From assembly GCA_965153285.1 (NCBI GenBank), contig OZ229114.1: a stretch of 64,000 nt of DNA. The stretch is one strand, 5' to 3'. The DNA is from Podarcis tiliguerta. Lineage: Eukaryota. Each line of letters opens with the position of its first letter. Positions within the stretch are counted from its first letter, which is position 1. Positions 673-12,939 of this stretch are shown piece after piece. Below the pieces are notes generated by a model, which was not told the origin of the DNA, did no database searches, and saw only the letters and a program-made list of their open reading frames with translations. Made by a program: the position numbers and the translations under genes.

Positions 673-1330
673 GTATGTTATTTGTGTATCTCAGGAGCAA
701 CACCTCATGTTATTGCTTCATCATGCACATGCAGTAGAATGCAGTTTTCCAGTTTGCTAAGATCCCTTGACACTAGGTTATGTGTGAAGAAAAAGACTGG
801 TCATTTGTAATGCCAAACCATGCCTTAGGAGAACGGGAACAAGACCTGTGCTCACGTAGTCTTCCTCATCCTCCTTCTTCCCTCTCATATGCCATTTAAT
901 TTGCTTCAAATCATTGTTTGCAATTACCGGCATATCCAAATAAGAAAACTGGTTTTCAACTACCCTCCATGCTGGGACCGCAAACCAGTTGCAAATCATG
1001 AGTTTCATTCCTGGTTTGGAGGGCAAGTGCGAACCATAGTTTGCCAGCTGGGTTGCAACTGTAAGTTGTAGTTTGTCACAAACCAGAAAGTAACCAATTA
1101 AACACAATGAATGAGAGGAGGAGGAAGCACATGAAGTGGAGACTTAACCATGTAATGCCAAGCCATGGGAACCAACTCACTCTGAGGCAGTTGTACCAGT
1201 ACAACAGGTCAAGGTCCATAAAAGAATAATTGGAATCTTGGGAATAGGTTAATGGACTAGTAGCAGAATGATGCAAGGCAGTCACAGTGAGAATTGAAGA
1301 CTGATTAACATTAATTTCATATTACTATTG

Positions 1331-1516
1331 AAATAAATAGTAGTAGTTCTGCGTATAAGCTTTTGTGTGCATGCACACTTCTTCAGTGTGCATGCACACG
1401 AAAGCTTATACCCAGAAGTACTTAGTTGGTCTCCAAGGTGCTACTGGACAATTTTAAATTCTTTTTTATTTATTTCGACTGCATCAGACCAACACAGCTC
1501 CCTACCTGTATCTAGA
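1331..1516. mobile_element. Penelope-like element terminal (pLTR) fragment with inverted arms
   Basis: 15-bp direct repeats TTCATATTACTATTG at 1316-1330 and 1517-1531; 33-bp inverted repeat 1347-1379/1385-1417; PLE-type GAAAGCTTATACC...AAGGTGCTAC...AGACCAACAC motifs. Confidence 0.75.
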
Positions 1517-2277
1517 TTCATATTACTATTGTCATTGTTTTCTGAATAGGAACTGTCAACTTCTTCAAATGTAAAAGTGGTAAAATAAACTCTAGGGTGC
1601 TATTTTCCCATGCAAAGGGAAAGACATGTACAATGTAACTTCTGTCATCTTAAACTTAAAGGGTTATCAACCATGCAAACATTCTTATAATGTAGACCAC
1701 TGAGAACAACTTCAAGGGACACACACAATTAGTGCTTGCAGATTAGGCGCACTGTAGAATCAAGGCTTAGTTAACAAAGGCTCTATAATGATACTGCGTT
1801 TTGACTTTTATAATAGGTTTAAGGACAGCAGGCTGCCTTAATTCTCTTCTATGTACTAATTTGCTTCTGAAATGTCTTGAGAATATGGCATGGGTCAGGT
1901 GTGGCATTAGTGAGTAGGCCAGGAGGACTTTTGCACCAGCCCTGGGTGTCCTGCCTTTGCAAAACCTTTTAAAAAGCACTACTTCGCCTACAGGACAACT
2001 TGGCACACTCCATAGTGCAGAGCTTAATTTGCCAAAGGGAATCTGTACATAAAAAATAGCATATGCAACTTTGTGTCATGGGTCTGTGTCTTGGGCGGCA
2101 GTACCCCGGCACGTGACCTCCAAGTTGATCTTTGAGCCACAACAAGAAGTCAATTGTCCAGGGCAGGACAATGAAAGAGGTGTTGAACAGTTATTAGGTA
2201 TGGCTTCCCAACAGTGCAACAAGTGAGAGAAATAATTGTTGCAATATGAATAAAATGAGTTTTCCTGTTTTCATTAG

Positions 2278-2407
2278 GATGGCTGCTTCCCATGTCCAAA
2301 TGGTGGATGCCCTAAAATGGGTCACTATGCAATTGAATCTAAAGGCAGATTCACCTCTTCATTTACAAAGCTTTATCTGAACACTGGAGATGCCAAGGAT
2401 TTTGCCC
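2278..2407 (+). CDS. Pancreatic lipase family, exon 10 equivalent
   Basis: tag|...|gtaagt, 130 nt; DGCFPCPNGGCPKMGHYAIESKGRFTSSFTKLYLNTGDAKDFA(R); phases match both neighbouring exons. Confidence 0.95.
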
Positions 2408-2743
2408 GTAAGTTCACTTTTGGAGTAAACTCTGAAGGCTGACCTTCATCCTATATTGGCAGCTCAGAGAACTGTATGAAACAATAGTTTGTTACAAAGA
2501 TTACAGTTTGCTCTATTGGTCTGGATTTCCATCTTGTATGTGGAGCAAAAAAGATCCTAGATAACTGGCAGCATCTTTCCCAAAAGCCAAGACAACACTT
2601 CAGATGCTGCTAAATTGTGCCTAGACAGGTGTAGTGTTTCAGCAAGCAAGAGCCACACACAAAGCAAGCTTTTGTGCACAGAGATCAGAAACAGATGTAC
2701 ATCAAATGTGCCATAATTCAGAGCACCTGTGTTCTGATTCACA

Positions 2744-3085
2744 GTGGTCTATCTAGCTCAGTATTGTCTACACAGTCAGCAGCTCTCCAGGGATTCATAG
2801 AATCATAGAATCATAGAACTGTAGAGTTGGAAGGGACCCTGAGGATCATCTAGTCCAACCCCCTGCAATGCAGGAATATGCAGTTGTCCCATACGGGGAT
2901 CAAACCTGCAACCTTGCCATTATCAGCACCAAGCTCTAACCAACTGAGCTATCCAGCAATGATAGCTATCCAGCACTCTTGATTCAGTCAAGAGTTTTTT
3001 CCAGCTGTTCCCAGCTGAGATTCCAGGGATTGAAACTGGGACCTTCCGCATGCAGAGCAGTTGCCCTAGCCAGGAACTATAGCCT
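2744..3085 (-). mobile_element. Squam3-type tRNA SINE interrupted by another SINE
   Basis: CTAGCTCAGTATTGTCTACAC...CAGCTCTCCAGG and CCAGGGATTGAAACTGGGACCTTC halves flank the 2796-2957 insert; similar to the copies at 16140, 46078 and 59620. Confidence 0.7.
2796..2957 (-). mobile_element. tRNA-derived SINE with CR1-type 3' tail (POM-SINE-like)
   Basis: Minus strand reads GCTGGATAGCTCAGTTGGTTAGAGC...GGTTTGATCCCC, then GGGGGTTGGACTAGATGA...CCCTTCCAACTCT and an (ATTCTATG)n tail. Confidence 0.8.
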
Positions 3086-3328
3086 GGAGCCATACTCTTT
3101 GCCTAGACAAATATTCAATTAATTCCACAACTTGAAGTGAAAGAGGATATTGCATAATACATTTGGTTTTGCAAATGATGTCTAAAGTTCCTCTGGTCTG
3201 AATCCTTCACATAAAAGAAATATCTGATATCAACACACAAAATTAAGACAAAGTAAGAAAAGTTAAATGTCAAGAATCATAGGAACTTGCCTGATGAAAA
3301 TCAAAATCTTGCTATTTGTGTTGTTCAG

Positions 3329-3440
3329 GTTGGAGGTACAAAATATCAGTCACTCTGTCTGGAAGAAGCAGTGTCCGTGGATACATAAATATTGCCCTAT
3401 ACGGAAGTGGAGGGAACACAAAGCAATATCAGATTTTCAA
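3329..3440 (+). CDS. Pancreatic lipase family, exon 11 equivalent (start of PLAT domain)
   Basis: cag|...|gtaagt, 112 nt; (R)WRYKISVTLSGRSSVRGYINIALYGSGGNTKQYQIF(K); ends in phase 2. Confidence 0.95.
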
Positions 3441-4404
3441 GTAAGTACAGTGGGTAGAAAATTAGATTTTAAAATATGTGTTCCTACTTGACACCTGCTT
3501 TTCTGTTTCTCTTTTTCTACTTGTAAGGCACTCCAAGATGATTTGATATATTTTTCTTTTCATATGGGGTGAACAGAAATGCAAATAAAGCTAAACAACA
3601 GATTTATATTCCATTACAATACATTCTATTTCATCTTCTAACAATTTTCTAGCAACTGGAGTTTTCTACATTAACCTCAAGGGCTCTTTTCTCTTTGGTT
3701 ATCCTACTTGTTTAATGAATTTATGACCCACCTTTCTGCAATAAAGCCTCTGAGGTAGTTAACAAAAATGCAGATACAAATGAAAAAATAAACACAAATA
3801 ACAGAGCAGCAAAAACCCAGTTTGCTTCTCAAGTGTGCTCTGCTCAGCTCTACTCTGCCAGGCTCTACCAGTGTGAGGTGCACCCCTCCAGTATGAAAAG
3901 CCCGCTTATGCCTGCCAAAATGTGGGCTGGCAGATGCAAGCAAAAGCCCCTGAAAGAAGACATTTGTGGGGGCAGAAAGGGACAGAGCTGGGTTAGCCAA
4001 GGATCCACTAGATCCTAACTCAGTCAAGGTATAGTAGCTGATAAGCCTAAACCAGCTCTCCAACCTTTGTGCCAGGAATTCGGATTGCACACTAAAGGTT
4101 ACAAAAATTACTAATTACTGACACTTTAGGGATCATATATATGAAACCAGGGTGTTTGTTTTCCTAATCCACAGTATTACAGTAACTCTTTTCGGACATT
4201 TTGCTGCCCAGTCACCCTGTTGTGGTGGTTTTCACAGTACATTTGCAGTTTTAGCAACTCAAATGAAATAATTTAAGATGGGTGGGTCCAAAAGAGCACG
4301 GGGCTTATGCACCTTTTTTTAATAGTTGTGTAGAAGTCATGCAGGGTACACCTGCTGAAATTCCCACTTCAGCTCAGCTGTAAAGTTGCAGGTGTCCTGC
4401 CCTC

Positions 4405-7400: not shown

Positions 7401-8086
7401 GTGTATTGAAATGCATCTGGGTCTTGGTATTGTTGCTGGTCACATGATTTTTGGTTCTCGGGATTCTTGCTGGCTACTTGTTATCTTATTACATTTCTCC
7501 ATATTTTTGAAAGTTTAAAGTTGAATTCTATTCTTATGTACATATTGCAATAATAATCCTTGCATCTTTTGCTCGAACCCTATTGTGTGCCTTGTTCCCT
7601 ATTTTTCACCTTACTGTGCTAGCTTAAGAGGTACTTGTCCATAATCACTAAACCCAGCTTCATCATCCTACTTGAGTAATCCCAATTTTTCAAAACAGTC
7701 GACGGAGGATGGGAACCCTAGGCTTACCATGTGGGCAAGAGCTGCAGACCACTCTTGCAGTAAACTATGGCATTCCTTCTTCTCAGTTAGTGGTTGTCTG
7801 CATTGCAAGTGAAATTCTCAGGAGCTGATGGAAAAGAAGCTAGATCTATGTGTTGGTATCTTCAGATGTGACAATACCAATGAGATGTTCAAATCTGATT
7901 GTGTGTGTTACCTCTTACAGTGTAGGTACTGAATAGTACATGATGCACTTGTGAACACAACATCCTAGAAACCACAGTGGCTGGACCAATGGCCAACACA
8001 TCCTCTTGTGTCAATTAGCCTTCACCATGACACAGCATGATCAGTCAATAATGAAGGAAATCACTTACCTGTTTTTATTTTTCAAG

Positions 8087-8254
8087 GGGAATGTTGAAGC
8101 CTGGCACTATACATACCAACTTCACCGACATAGACGTCAATATTGGAGCAGTAGCTAAAGTTAAATTCCTTTGGAACAATGATATCATAAACCCAACCTT
8201 TCCCAAATTGGGAGCCTCAAAGATTCAGGTGCAAGATGGAGAAGATGGACATAT
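8087..8254 (+). CDS. Pancreatic lipase family, exon 12 copy A (PLAT/colipase-binding domain)
   Basis: Branch-point-like CTTAC at 8064-8068, pyrimidine tract, caag|...|gtatgt; 168 nt, phase 2-2, no stops; GMLKPGTIHTNFTDIDVNIGAVAKVKFLWNNDIINPTFPKLGASKIQVQDGEDGH(I). Not in the ORF track. Confidence 0.85.
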
Positions 8255-8320
8255 GTATGTATAAGTGTTTTAAAAAAAGAACCTATTTGTGTATATGTAT
8301 CATATTTTTTTCTCTCCAAG

Positions 8321-8488
8321 GGGGAAACTCCAACCTGATGAAACTTATACCCACCTAATTGATGTACAACTTAATGTTGGATCAGTTACTAAGGTTAAAT
8401 TTCTGTGGAACAACAATATCATAAACCCAACTTTGCCCAAACTGGGAGCAGCAAAGATTACAGTACAGGATGGAGAAGATGGGACAGT
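8321..8488 (+). CDS. Pancreatic lipase family, exon 12 copy B (PLAT/colipase-binding domain)
   Basis: ttttctctccaag|...|gtatgt; 168 nt, phase 2-2; GKLQPDETYTHLIDVQLNVGSVTKVKFLWNNNIINPTLPKLGAAKITVQDGEDGT(V), within ORF 8289..8546. Confidence 0.9.
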
Positions 8489-8816
8489 GTATGTATCCAT
8501 TTGCTGTTTTATACAAAAAAAGCACAAACCCATAAATATTTATTAAAGATATACAATTATCTTCAAAACATACCAGAGGCTCAACACTGTTGCAGGAGAG
8601 TTTTGGGGAGAAAGATGCTAATCAGTAGCCTGTTTTTAGTATATTTTGAATACTTTAAAGACAAATTTAGGGGTGACTAAACCTGTGGTCTTTCCATAGT
8701 TGCTGGACTGCAGTTCCCAGCAATCCTGACCCATGTAGTAAATGGTCAAGGATGATGGGATTTGGAGTCCAGCAATGTCTGGAAGGCCACAGGCTAGCCA
8801 TTCATGCTACACAACC

Positions 8817-8940
8817 AGTGGTGTAGTGCTTAGCATCGGATTAGGACCTACCTGAGAAACCAGGGTTCAAATCCCCACTCGGCCATGAAGCTCACTGGGT
8901 GACCTTGGGCCAGTCATGGTCTCACATCTCTCTTAGCCTT
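8817..8940 (+). mobile_element. MIR/CORE-like squamate tRNA SINE (Squam2-like)
   Basis: A/B-box-like GTGTAGTG...GGGTTCAAATCCCC followed by GCCATGAAGCTCACTGGGTGACCTTGGGCCAGTCA; a reverse 3' fragment is present at about 63592-63660. Confidence 0.65.
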
Positions 8941-9511
8941 GGCATTGTTTGGGTACATGTTTAAAAATAGTATTGGAAAGAGTGTGTATGTTGTACATAA
9001 TTTGACTCTTGTGCTTTTGATTTAGCTATTGTTAGGGTGTTGCATTTAAAACTGATAGTTGTGCAGGGCAGATTTATACATTCTTACACAGAAACTCTCG
9101 TGTGTCCAATGTGTCATTTAAAATTAATTAATTTAATTTTATAACAATAAATTATATGAATAGCAACCATGTGACACATAAATATATTCTCAAGTAAGAA
9201 TCTTTAGGACCACCCCCGCATGTATACTCAGAAATAAGCTCCATTAAGTTTAGCAAAGGTTGTTCCCAGATAAGTATCTTTAGGAATGGACATTTAAATG
9301 TAAGTTTTTCAGTTATCATTATTCATTCAGTTAGGCAATGTTAGCTGCTGAAGTGAATTGCCTTATGGCCCTTCCCTCTGGACTTTGTGATCTTATGGGC
9401 CTCCCTTGGTTAGATTGTAAGGTGTCTAATTTCACCTTCAAGCAGCCCTACTGTGTTTGGGAACCTTCCAATTATTTCTGCTGAGTGTGCCCCTAAAACC
9501 TTCCCTTAGTG

Positions 9512-9643
9512 CAAATGTAGGAAATTTTTGGTTCTCCAGATGTTGCTGAGCTACAGTTCCCATCAGCCCCAGCAGCTAATGACTATTGATGATGAGAATC
9601 GTGGTTCAGCAACCTCTGGAGGGCTAATGGTTCCTAACACCTG
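9512..9643. mobile_element. hAT-Charlie (URR1-like) palindromic MITE
   Basis: 8-bp TSD CCTTAGTG at 9504-9511 and 9644-9651; CTCCAGATGTTG...CTACAGTTCCCATCA arm. Older relatives at about 8668-8806, 23940-24020, 24635-24745, 31065-31160, 42424-42530, 43986-44192 and 51455-51575. Confidence 0.75.
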
Positions 9644-10112
9644 CCTTAGTGCACTGCTGGGAATTTTGTAAGATGTTTGCATGGACGTTGCAAATATGAT
9701 CAAAGTATAAGAATGAATGAACATGGGTAGTTCCTTGCAGGAAATAAGTACTTTAGTATTGGTCCCAGTGACATAAGAAGGCCCTGGAATGGGATACAAT
9801 GTGGTGATGCATAATATTCCTTTTGCAAAAACCCTGGGCCTTAAATCCACCCCCCCAAAAGATTCTTTTAGAATGTTCTTTAAATAACCAGCATTTTTGT
9901 AGCATTAGAGATATTCAATAGATGAAGATAAAATCAACACAATTATAAAAAAATGCTGATACAAAATTAAATAAATGCACACTCTGTATTTATTACATTT
10001 TCTGGGAGCGTATGATGCAAAATTAAAACATCCTACTAAAATGGACTTGCAATAAAAATGAAACATTAACACTTTTAAACTAATGAATATATATGTGTTT
10101 TTTAATCCTCAG

Positions 10113-10176
10113 ATACAATTTCTGTGGTAGTGACACAGTGAGAGAAGATGTTCTGCAAACACTTACACCGTGCTGA
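10113..10176 (+). CDS. Pancreatic lipase family, terminal coding exon
   Basis: cctcag|A TAC AAT TTC...TGA; YNFCGSDTVREDVLQTLTPC*, the canonical pancreatic lipase C-terminus. Confidence 0.95.
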
Positions 10177-10215
10177 ATAACAAGAAAAAACAGAAAAAGC
10201 TTTTATGCAAATCTT

Positions 10216-10221
10216 AATAAA
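10216..10221 (+). terminator. Polyadenylation signal of the lipase gene
   Basis: AATAAA 40 nt after the stop codon, followed by T/GT-rich sequence. Confidence 0.75.
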
Positions 10222-10839
10222 AAGTCATAATGCTCCGCAGTCCACTTTCTAGGACTTTTGGCTGTTAACTGCTTTTGTATTATTTTATGTGATAATTTTT
10301 CTGTACTAGAATGTGAAAGAGATGACTAATTTATAAAAAAGAAAATGTTGCCTTTTCCATTTAAAAGACCCAAACATAGGCATACTAAGCTGCAATAGTC
10401 CACAGCAGCAAAACTGCAGGGGAATGTTTGCCTAGTGGAGGCACATTCCAGCCTCATGCGCTCTTGAATATATGAACTGCCAAATTAATTGTAATGGATG
10501 GCACAGATCCCTTTGCATAAAATGCAAATATATGTGTGTTATCCCTATCAATATGAATTGAGCATCCTTTGCAGGTTGAGGAACTGTATATGCACTGGTT
10601 ACCGGCCTTTAATCCAGCATGCTACAGTATATAGTTCAGCTCAGTGCTTTTCTTCAAGGAAAAAGGGTTCCAGTACTCACCATGAAGTTGTTACAGTAAT
10701 CGTCACACTTTTAACCAGTGCTTTTCTTCTAGAAAATCAAAGTACCAGTACTGCATAGCCTTGAGTACACCCAGAAGAAAAGCACCAGTTAAGCTTAACT
10801 ACTTGCATCCAAATACACATCCCATTGGAGGAAATGCAG

Positions 10840-11030
10840 TGGAAATGGACAAGCAGGTTGATGGACTGTACCTAAAGGGCGTTCATCAACAGCAAATTGT
10901 CAACCTGGAGAGAAGTAGCAAGGAGGGTGCCTTGGGGTTTGGTCTTGGGTACCGCATTGCTCAATATCTTTATAAATGGCTTGAATGAAAGAGTATGTTA
11001 ATCAAAGCTGCAGATGGCACCAAATCAATG
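10840..11030 (+). mobile_element. Degenerate CR1 LINE reverse transcriptase fragment
   Basis: Frameshifted matches to STWREV.SGVPQGSVLG..FNIFIN...LIKFADDTK (e.g. tcaacctggagagaagta, caatatctttataaat, gcagatggcaccaaa). Confidence 0.65.
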
Positions 11031-12939
11031 GCATAAAACAGTCTCTTGCTGTCCATCTCCCCTTCGCATACAGGACTCTCCCTCCACCCAAGCTAAGGAT
11101 TGGGGAAGGACTGGATTGGACTGCAAAGCTTTTAAGACAGCCAAGAGGGATATTCAGTCACAAAGCCAAAAATTGATTGAGAGGAAGAGAACCCCAGGGC
11201 TATTTTTAAAAAAACAAATTTTCTGTCCCCCTCAAAAATGTTTTTGGGAATTTTGTGACTGTTTTCATCCAATGCAAGGTTCTTGTCATTTTTAGCTTTC
11301 CAGGCCAGTCCTCATTATGTACCTATAGAGCTATAGAATAGCTGTTCATGAGTATGTGAGGAAGCTATTTCGTTGTGTTTAACAATTTAGTTGCAGAATA
11401 TAGTGGTTCAATTATGAATATGCAAAAGACCCCATGAAAGACTCTGTTAAACTGTTCATTGTTTTCTCTCTCACACACACATCTCAGCTAAGCATAAAGT
11501 GTTAGCAAGAGCTCCTTTGATTGGGATGTAATTATCTGTGTATGCCTTGAAAATGGACTTTTAATACCCCAAGAAGAGTCGATTATTCACACAGGAGAAA
11601 GCCACTTAATTTAGAAAATCATCTTCCCCACAGAGTTTGATACAGACAATTGTTGTTTTATAGAAACAAAGATGTATAAAATGGGTCTGGTGAGAACAAA
11701 GAACTCATGATAGGTTTAGACAAGGTTTTGAGATATACAATATAACACCAGTCAAAAAATGCAAAAGTAGCTAATTCACACCTGTAAGCAGAGCAAGGCA
11801 AGCTACAAATGCATGTATTTTAGGCTGCCATTCTACACACACTTAACTGGGAATAGCTCCCGCTGAGTTCAGCAGTATATCTGAAAGTCTCAGTAATACA
11901 TAGGATTCCACTGTTACATCAGAGAGGAGTTTTGGTGCTTCAGGCAAGTACACTCTGGTTCAATTAATATACCAGTGCGATGACAAATGCTCTTCTTCAT
12001 GTGATTATCTGGTTTAATAGGTTAATCCACCTGATCTGCCAAATTATAGATTTGCCTATGGGAGTTCCCCAGGCACTTCCAGGCTGTCTCACTTTGTGTA
12101 GATTACTTCCTTTATGCCTTAAGAGTACATGCTCCCAAAGAACAACAAAGAAAGTGCGTGCAATGTGATACATAGGCGGTAGCTAAATGGGGCTCTTGTA
12201 GAGCACATCCACTTTGAAAACAAAAACCACACTGTACAGTAGGAATAATAGTTGAGCTGCACAAATCAAGTGTACACACATATACACACAAACATATATG
12301 TACATGTGTAGTAGAGGCAGTTAGTGAAATGGGTGAACAAGCCTTAGAAAATATTTAAGCCCACATTTCCACCTCTGGGAAATCTGCATCACATTCTGGT
12401 CTACAAAGATTGCTGACTCTATTAGAGAAAGATGGATTGGGAACCAAAGTTCTCATATATCACATCACAATAGGAAGTAACCAAGGAAATATAATTTAAG
12501 AGAAAACCCTAAGAGCCATGTTTTGTGCTCCTTTCCCTGTGATTTCAAATGCATATTTGCTGCAGTGCATAAACTTTAGATTGATTACGTGCCCTTAGCA
12601 TACATTTTTACTCCTCCTAAGGAAGTTGAAACATCTTTTGCCTTTGCTAATTCATTTAAACTCAAGCAAGCATTACATTTGCCTATACTGTAATAGTGAA
12701 ATGGATTTCATTTTTAGAAAACACTCAGCGTTATTCGGGCTGCTAGTTTTCCTGAATTTGGCTCCTATGCCTTTATTTTACCTTTGTAGTAAGAAGAAAT
12801 TTGATAGGTGATCTTTCTTTCCCCACTATAACATTTTCATGCCTGGAAAAAGCTAAATTTGTGCTTCTCATTAAGACTGCAATCCCACAGATTTGCCTGG
12901 AAATAAGTCTTGCAGATTTCTGAGTAGACATGTACTGTA

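Follow-up and report, generated by a model that had tools for sequence, protein, structure and literature searches.

Does this locus encode one pancreatic lipase or two? The 64,000-nt stretch of Podarcis tiliguerta DNA that we analyzed (contig OZ229114.1 of assembly GCA_965153285.1; hereafter the window) contains a lipase gene's 3′ half, in which the penultimate coding exon, exon 12, is found twice in succession, as copies A and B. At issue is whether the two copies are alternatives to one another, how splicing might be limited to one of them, and what the choice could mean for the enzyme. A plausible scenario explaining our data, to which we assign a probability of roughly 0.8 on the basis of comparative sequence analysis, is that in this lacertid lipase gene the penultimate coding exon was duplicated before the Laterata/Toxicofera split and that the copies have been kept as mutually exclusive exons. 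In this scheme a tandem duplication of the exon would have been followed by the retention of both copies as alternative exons.

All features described here are on the plus strand. Exon 9 (554-672), which encodes the end of the catalytic domain and is bounded by an ag acceptor and a gtatgt donor, and exon 10 (2278-2407) were located by tblastn with a turtle lipase. They are followed by exon 11 (3329-3440; acceptor ...ttcag, donor gtaagt), which is the first exon of the PLAT domain, by exon 12A (8087-8254), by the spacer intron between the copies (8255-8320), by exon 12B (8321-8488) and by the coding part of the shared last exon, exon 13 (10113-10176), which ends in a TGA stop codon (10174-10176) and is followed by AATAAA at 10216-10221. 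The exons that precede exon 9 lie upstream of the window. Exons were compared singly and placed row by row under the full-length turtle lipase, with natural full-length orthologues standing for the whole protein.

Re-reading the sequence bore out the original prediction of two homologous 168-nt exons of the same phase, each with a CAAG acceptor (AG at 8085-8086 for A and at 8319-8320 for B) and a GTATGT donor (8255-8260 and 8489-8494, respectively), separated by 66 nt and free of stops and indels. Each copy has one open frame that starts at the second base and consists of 55 full codons with a split codon at either end, and each covers residues 375-429 in the mature numbering of human pancreatic lipase (HPL), where 375 is the first exon-12 residue. 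A repeat finder independently recovered the pair as a direct repeat with a period of 234 nt. The predicted protein identity of 35/56 holds as to the 35 identities, but the denominator is 55, a small counting difference (BLASTP E value 3e-27). At the DNA level 118 of 168 positions are identical and the differences are spread 17/7/25 over the three codon positions. A recount of the last 33 codons returned exactly the 10 synonymous and 6 replacement differences reported before. Whereas the exons align without indels, several indels are needed to align the first ~45 nt of the two downstream introns.

Either copy can join exon 11 (which ends at 3440) to the last exon (which begins at 10113) in frame, again as had been proposed. 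The AA at the 3′ end of exon 11 forms a Lys codon with the G that opens either copy, and the A at 10113 completes an Ile codon after copy A, which ends in AT, and a Val codon after copy B, which ends in GT. Splicing of 11-A-13 or of 11-B-13 would thus give a 468-residue protein either way, with the same catalytic domain. The claim that double inclusion would also stay in frame is correct as well, since the A-to-B join (AT+G) reads as Met; skipping both copies likewise keeps the frame.

We found no third exon copy and no second lipase gene within the 64-kb window, and no further lipase exons between 10200 and 64000. A 28-nt stretch upstream of exon A (8050-8077, including a cctgttttta tract) recurs with 75% identity at 8611-8638, about 120 nt downstream of B; this could be due to chance or could be an upstream-flank remnant of a lost third copy, and no exon-like frame follows the repeat. 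Five open reading frames of at least 130 aa in the window gave no Pfam match. The GC content of the 10200-64000 region ranges from 0.38 to 0.47 and peaks at 56-60 kb.

With regard to how splicing might be restricted to one copy, we consider steric exclusion by the 66-nt spacer to be the most economical mechanism and lean modestly toward it; the branch point in question is a predicted one, and one upstream of exon A is possible. A motif scan places all adenines of the spacer at most 49 nt from A's donor. The last 16 nt of the spacer are taken up by B's 13-nt pyrimidine tract (8305-8317) and AG, and the adenine within the spacer that is the best predicted candidate for B's branch point is the one at 8302 (AUCAU), at a distance of 18 nt from the AG and of 47 nt from the donor of A. 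The minimum distance between a 5′ splice site and a branch site has been estimated from structures at 52 nt, and a distance of 50 nt lets early complexes assemble while one of 35 nt does not (PMC6692369). A-to-B splicing would accordingly be blocked mainly by there being too little room (at most 49 nt) between A's donor and B's branch point. The reasoning behind our preference is that this geometry falls under the ~52-nt minimum and that other mechanisms drop out: (i) U12/U2 incompatibility was rejected because both donors are U2-type GTATGT; (ii) policing by NMD was rejected because the frame is preserved whether both copies are included or both are skipped and (iii) competing RNA structures were rejected because a 501-nt region folds no better than its shuffles (z = 0.17) and its inverted repeats are short and imperfect, with a single one, I2 (15 nt, 80%), linking A's donor to exon B.

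The rival that fares best concerns this mechanism and holds that exclusion is set not by the short spacer but by competing signals or regulatory factors, for instance activators specific to a tissue or PTB-type repression acting on the UCUCU-rich tract of B. We regard this as possible but the less probable of the two mechanisms. The pyrimidine tract of B does contain UCUCU-like motifs, and other vertebrate exclusive pairs (alpha-tropomyosin, alpha-actinin) combine steric and protein-mediated control, which we count in its favor. Ultra-short vertebrate introns can splice, which also speaks for regulators, and a length of 66 nt is no absolute bar. On the other hand, the donor-to-branch distance by itself is already under the estimated minimum, and there is no exceptional RNA structure for a competing signal to use, only the one short imperfect inverted repeat. 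Protein regulators may nevertheless add to or replace steric exclusion, and the spacer offers a compact reptilian test case for steric enforcement of exclusive splicing.

The identity of the gene is well defined. In searches against solved structures, exons A and B hit PLRP1, PLRP2 and PNLIP over residues 375-429 with E values from 1e-17 to 3e-9 (best ~1e-17), and the Pfam PLAT model PF01477 is matched by exon 11 (18 bits), A (20.4 bits) and B (27.3 bits), of which exon 11 and A, as domain fragments, fall under the 23-bit cut-off that applies to whole domains. Exons 9, 10, 11, B and 13 show 100% identity to the Podarcis muralis and P. raffonei proteins called 'inactive pancreatic lipase-related protein 1-like' (40/40 residues for exon 9, 44/44 for exon 10, 36/36 for exon 11, 55/55 for exon B in P0083 and P0082, respectively, and 20/20 for the last exon), and exons 9-13 are 95-100% identical to the proteins of Lacerta and Zootoca. 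The Podarcis and Lacerta orthologues carry GHSLG, GLDP and HLDFYPNGG (the exons for the Ser-Asp-His triad lie outside the window). Mammalian PLRP1 is inactive owing to a Val179/Ala181-type pair next to the catalytic Asp. These PLRP1-type inactivating substitutions are absent from the lizard orthologues (P0079, P0083, P0192 and P0093), which read GLDPAQPYF or GLDPASPYF, that is, with Ala-x-Pro after the catalytic Asp, as in active PNLIP. Since they have Ala-x-Pro and lack the Val/Ala pair, the name 'inactive' is probably a misnomer for the lizard proteins that was inherited from naming by similarity.

Copy A requires a separate argument, as the NCBI entries for P. muralis and P. raffonei contain the B form only and carry no isoform label. 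Exon A could be a silent relic in Podarcis, with only B being spliced and A still open through inertia or through a very recent loss of use, and the fact that A evolves faster than B would fit with this. We nevertheless judge a relic to be improbable. Exon A is intact, has both splice sites and is preceded by a consensus CTTAC branch site, whose candidate adenine is predicted by the motif scan at 8067, 19 nt upstream of the AG. It matches the A segment of a P. muralis model (P0099) at 54 of 55 residues and the A segment of Lacerta agilis isoform X2 (P0084), a RefSeq isoform, at 51 of 55; in other words, it is one residue away from the former and four from the latter. Furthermore, an exon that had long been out of use would not be expected to stay free of stops and indels over 168 nt while the adjoining intron gained indels. 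We therefore favor the possibility that exon A, too, is spliced in the Podarcis genome from which the window comes.

Two Ensembl-derived P. muralis models in UniProt illustrate what the duplicated exon does to automated annotation. In P0099, exon A runs on out of frame into an internal site of B, with ...LNFCGTTIS as the end of the protein, and P0169 reads through the A-B spacer and beyond B's donor; both modelling errors stem from the exon duplication. As inferred from the intron retained in P0169, the P. muralis spacer differs from that of the window and, at 65 nt, is one base shorter. The practical consequences are that the NCBI Podarcis models lack an A isoform, that one Ensembl-derived model is mis-spliced and that the 'inactive' label is probably wrong.

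In related lizards the two forms are annotated side by side. The two RefSeq isoforms of Lacerta agilis have 468 residues each, X1 being of the B type and X2 of the A type, and their 20 differences all fall within positions 394-447. Pairs of equal length that differ only in the exon-12 segment are also present at NCBI for Anolis carolinensis (482 residues each), Anolis sagrei (479), Sceloporus undulatus (469) and Elgaria multicarinata (468). The Pogona vitticeps pair has 474 and 473 residues, the A form being shorter by one, and here the A and B segments were recognized but not mapped position by position. Ensembl-derived models of Salvator merianae contain an A-type exon. The split codon that follows the alternative exon encodes, in every case, a residue that fits the common last exon (Ile for A and Val for B in Elgaria; Met and Val in A. 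carolinensis). The original prediction of two lipases from a single gene, identical in the catalytic domain and alternative in part of the C-terminal PLAT beta-sandwich, thus finds support in the A/B isoform pairs of six lizard species, and at this level, that of annotated isoforms of six related species, the reading that each mature transcript would include exactly one copy is likewise supported.

These isoform models are automated predictions, and the A-type isoforms could in principle be annotation artefacts that have spread by homology, the A exons never being expressed. Models at this locus can err, as is clear from the mis-spliced P0099 and from a Sceloporus undulatus isoform, X3. The NCBI pipeline, for its part, would normally need transcript alignments for alternative variants. 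What makes artefacts very unlikely is that the A-specific residues G380, H383, F386, D406, F412 and H429 are kept across Laterata, Iguania and Anguimorpha and that the A-type exons group together in a phylogenetic tree; conservation of this kind, with dN/dS at ~0.2-0.25, needs selection on a translated product. As for Sceloporus X3 itself (P0193, compared with P0192 and P0189), it is a chimera in which the first 31 residues are of the A type and the last 24 of the B type, with the switch point falling within KVKFLWNN, a stretch that is almost the same in both types. The chimera probably arose as an artefact of alignment or template switching, although it could be a real recombinant haplotype.

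The tree in question is a maximum-likelihood tree of 41 exon-12 peptides built on an alignment of 55 columns. The nine exons of the A type cluster apart from every B-type exon, with support of 78/97, and do so in 200 of 200 bootstrap trees. It follows from this grouping that the duplication is older than the split between Laterata and Toxicofera and, because A-bearing species belong both to Laterata (Lacertidae, Teiidae) and to Toxicofera (Iguania, Anguimorpha), at least as old as Episquamata, in so far as exon sequences are a guide. The Laterata/Toxicofera split took place well over 150 million years ago. On the 55-column tree the exons of tuatara, gecko, birds and turtles could not be placed relative to the A/B split, and a topology in which the duplication lies inside squamates was not rejected (p-AU 0.25).

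Mean identity is 39/55 among A exons and 46/55 among B exons, while A and B within one species share 32-37 of 55 residues; orthologues are thus closer than paralogues, and there has therefore been no concerted evolution. In the window, A and B differ by a dN of 0.24 and a dS of 0.93-1.26, the latter being saturated, which puts dN/dS at ~0.2-0.25. Between the window and Lacerta there are four replacements in A and one in B, making A the faster copy. Given that A and B have each been kept as a separate lineage across Laterata, Iguania and Anguimorpha, both copies are under purifying selection, and A, while evolving faster than B, is by these measures clearly constrained.

Searches beyond the annotated squamate proteins added some context. 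A first scan of metagenome contigs gave no match; a second returned two bird-like host contigs, each holding the orthologous lipase gene, in which exon 12 is single and has the same GTATGT donor (Ga0065711_1028778, 8114-11461, and Ga0181612_176581, 786-4133), which provide a single-copy outgroup. When exon A was searched against representative proteins, most matches were fragments of exon size from mammals and other vertebrates; also seen was a giant representative protein of 6218 aa (P0002) with eight stretches matching exon 12. A 72-aa Logan fragment, P0054, has an A-like C-terminal half (NND, PTFP and GH, then Met at the donor) and an N-terminal half that resembles skink B, and the tree assigns it to neither type (p-AU 0.31). 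It may be a partly gene-converted skink A exon, and if it is a skink A exon the duplication would be pushed back to Unidentata.

That transcripts normally include A together with B, so that the lipase would have part of its PLAT domain repeated internally, is the least probable reading of all: the A-to-B join is in frame and a doubled exon is shown by a sturgeon entry (P0001, Acipenser sinensis), but there is no model of ~524 residues among the squamate proteins examined, where every pair has 468-482 residues and a single copy and none contains both exons, and a doubled half-sandwich would be expected to misfit the PLAT fold. The sturgeon entry was rejected as a precedent, as its two copies are identical, it is flagged UNVERIFIED_CONTAM and the protein of a sister species has a single copy.

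If the copies are indeed exclusive, the two lipases would differ at ~20 of 55 residues in a defined part of the C-terminal PLAT beta-sandwich, exon 12 encoding the beta5′ loop together with strands beta4, beta5 and beta6 and the last part of beta3. The two Lacerta isoforms, A and B, have the same pattern of PLAT strands in their AlphaFold models, with pLDDT over 10-residue blocks across exon 12 of 71-94 for A and 70-92 for B. The type-specific residues sit in strand beta4, in the beta5′ loop (406 and 412) and in beta6. A has G at position 380 where B mostly has D, S, T or D at 381 (E in B), H at 383 (Y in B), F at 386 (L in B), D at 406 (N in B), F at 412 (L in B), Q, L or M at 421 (T in B) and H at 429 (N or T in B). 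The loop at precursor positions 424-432 is one that we take, in name and in role, to be the beta5′ loop, mature residues 405-414. Within the window an N-x-T sequon is present only in A (NFT, 385-387); this NFT sequon is kept in the A exons of Lacerta, Salvator and Pogona and is absent from those of Anolis, Sceloporus and Elgaria.

The contacts that HPL's C-terminal domain makes with colipase are Gln369, Lys400, Ile402 and Tyr404 (PMC7094207). The three that fall in exon 12 (400, 402 and 404) are K, L and N in A and in B alike, which means that the divergence between the two types spares the core colipase contacts. A switch between A and B would consequently not be expected to act through these contacts, which the two have in common, and may instead tune behavior at the lipid interface or with micelles by way of the beta5′ loop (406, 412) and the beta4 face. 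Taken as a whole, the picture of a lineage-specific exon switch that dates at least to the Laterata/Toxicofera ancestor, and possibly to Lepidosauria, and that presents two different lipid-interface faces (D or N at 406, F or L at 412, and beta4) with the same colipase contacts has, in our estimate, about an even chance of being right.

If this picture is correct, alternative splicing would be doing in these lizards what mammals do with separate PNLIP, PLRP1 and PLRP2 genes, and the isoforms might be specific to a tissue, a stage or a diet, for example to the pancreas as opposed to another secretory tissue. Homologous exclusive exon pairs are rare, and no other class of alternative splicing has better evidence that it is functional. 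A conserved squamate pair would amount to a clean natural experiment in which the difference between isoforms is confined to a defined stretch of 55 PLAT-domain residues. The A/B isoforms are already present in the public automated annotation of several lizards; we class the pair as a tandem duplicated exon substitution.

Full-text literature searches turned up no description of an exon-12 switch in any pancreatic lipase, in agreement with the original prediction, which knew of no such switch in the mammalian PNLIP/PNLIPRP genes. PNLIP is also not mentioned in the main texts of two catalogues of human tandem exons (PMC9741552, PMC8373072). The mammalian PNLIP, PNLIPRP1 and PNLIPRP2 proteins (PDB 1lpa, 1rp1, 2ppl, 2pvs) have the same two-domain build as the lizard lipase, but in mammals the domain variants are encoded by separate paralogous genes, whereas in the lizards they would come from alternative versions of exon 12 in one gene.

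There is precedent for this type of exon pair in human genes. As presented in the main texts of the same two catalogues (PMC9741552, PMC8373072), human tandem exon substitutions resemble the lizard pair in that the exons are adjacent and homologous, have equal length and phase and make proteins that differ in one segment, and also in that both copies are conserved and the differences fall in strands and loops of binding domains. One of these texts counts 236 human events, more than 90% of which date to bony fish or earlier (PMC9741552); against this mostly bony-fish age, the lizard pair is so far confined to squamates, and it is located in a secreted digestive enzyme rather than in an ion channel or cytoskeletal gene. 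For the proposed mechanism the closest parallel is the exon 2/3 pair of alpha-tropomyosin (Smith and Nadal-Ginard 1989, as cited in PMC6692369), where, as is proposed for the lizard pair, the downstream branch point is too near the upstream donor and where double inclusion is likewise in frame and beyond policing by NMD. In alpha-tropomyosin the closeness arises because the branch point of a longer intron is unusually distant, whereas in the lizard pair the whole intron is 66 nt and the branch point is predicted. Exons 4a and 4b of OGDH (PMC7969005) differ from the lizard pair in that their branch points are distant and the pyrimidine tract is very long, where the lizard lipase has a minimal intron.
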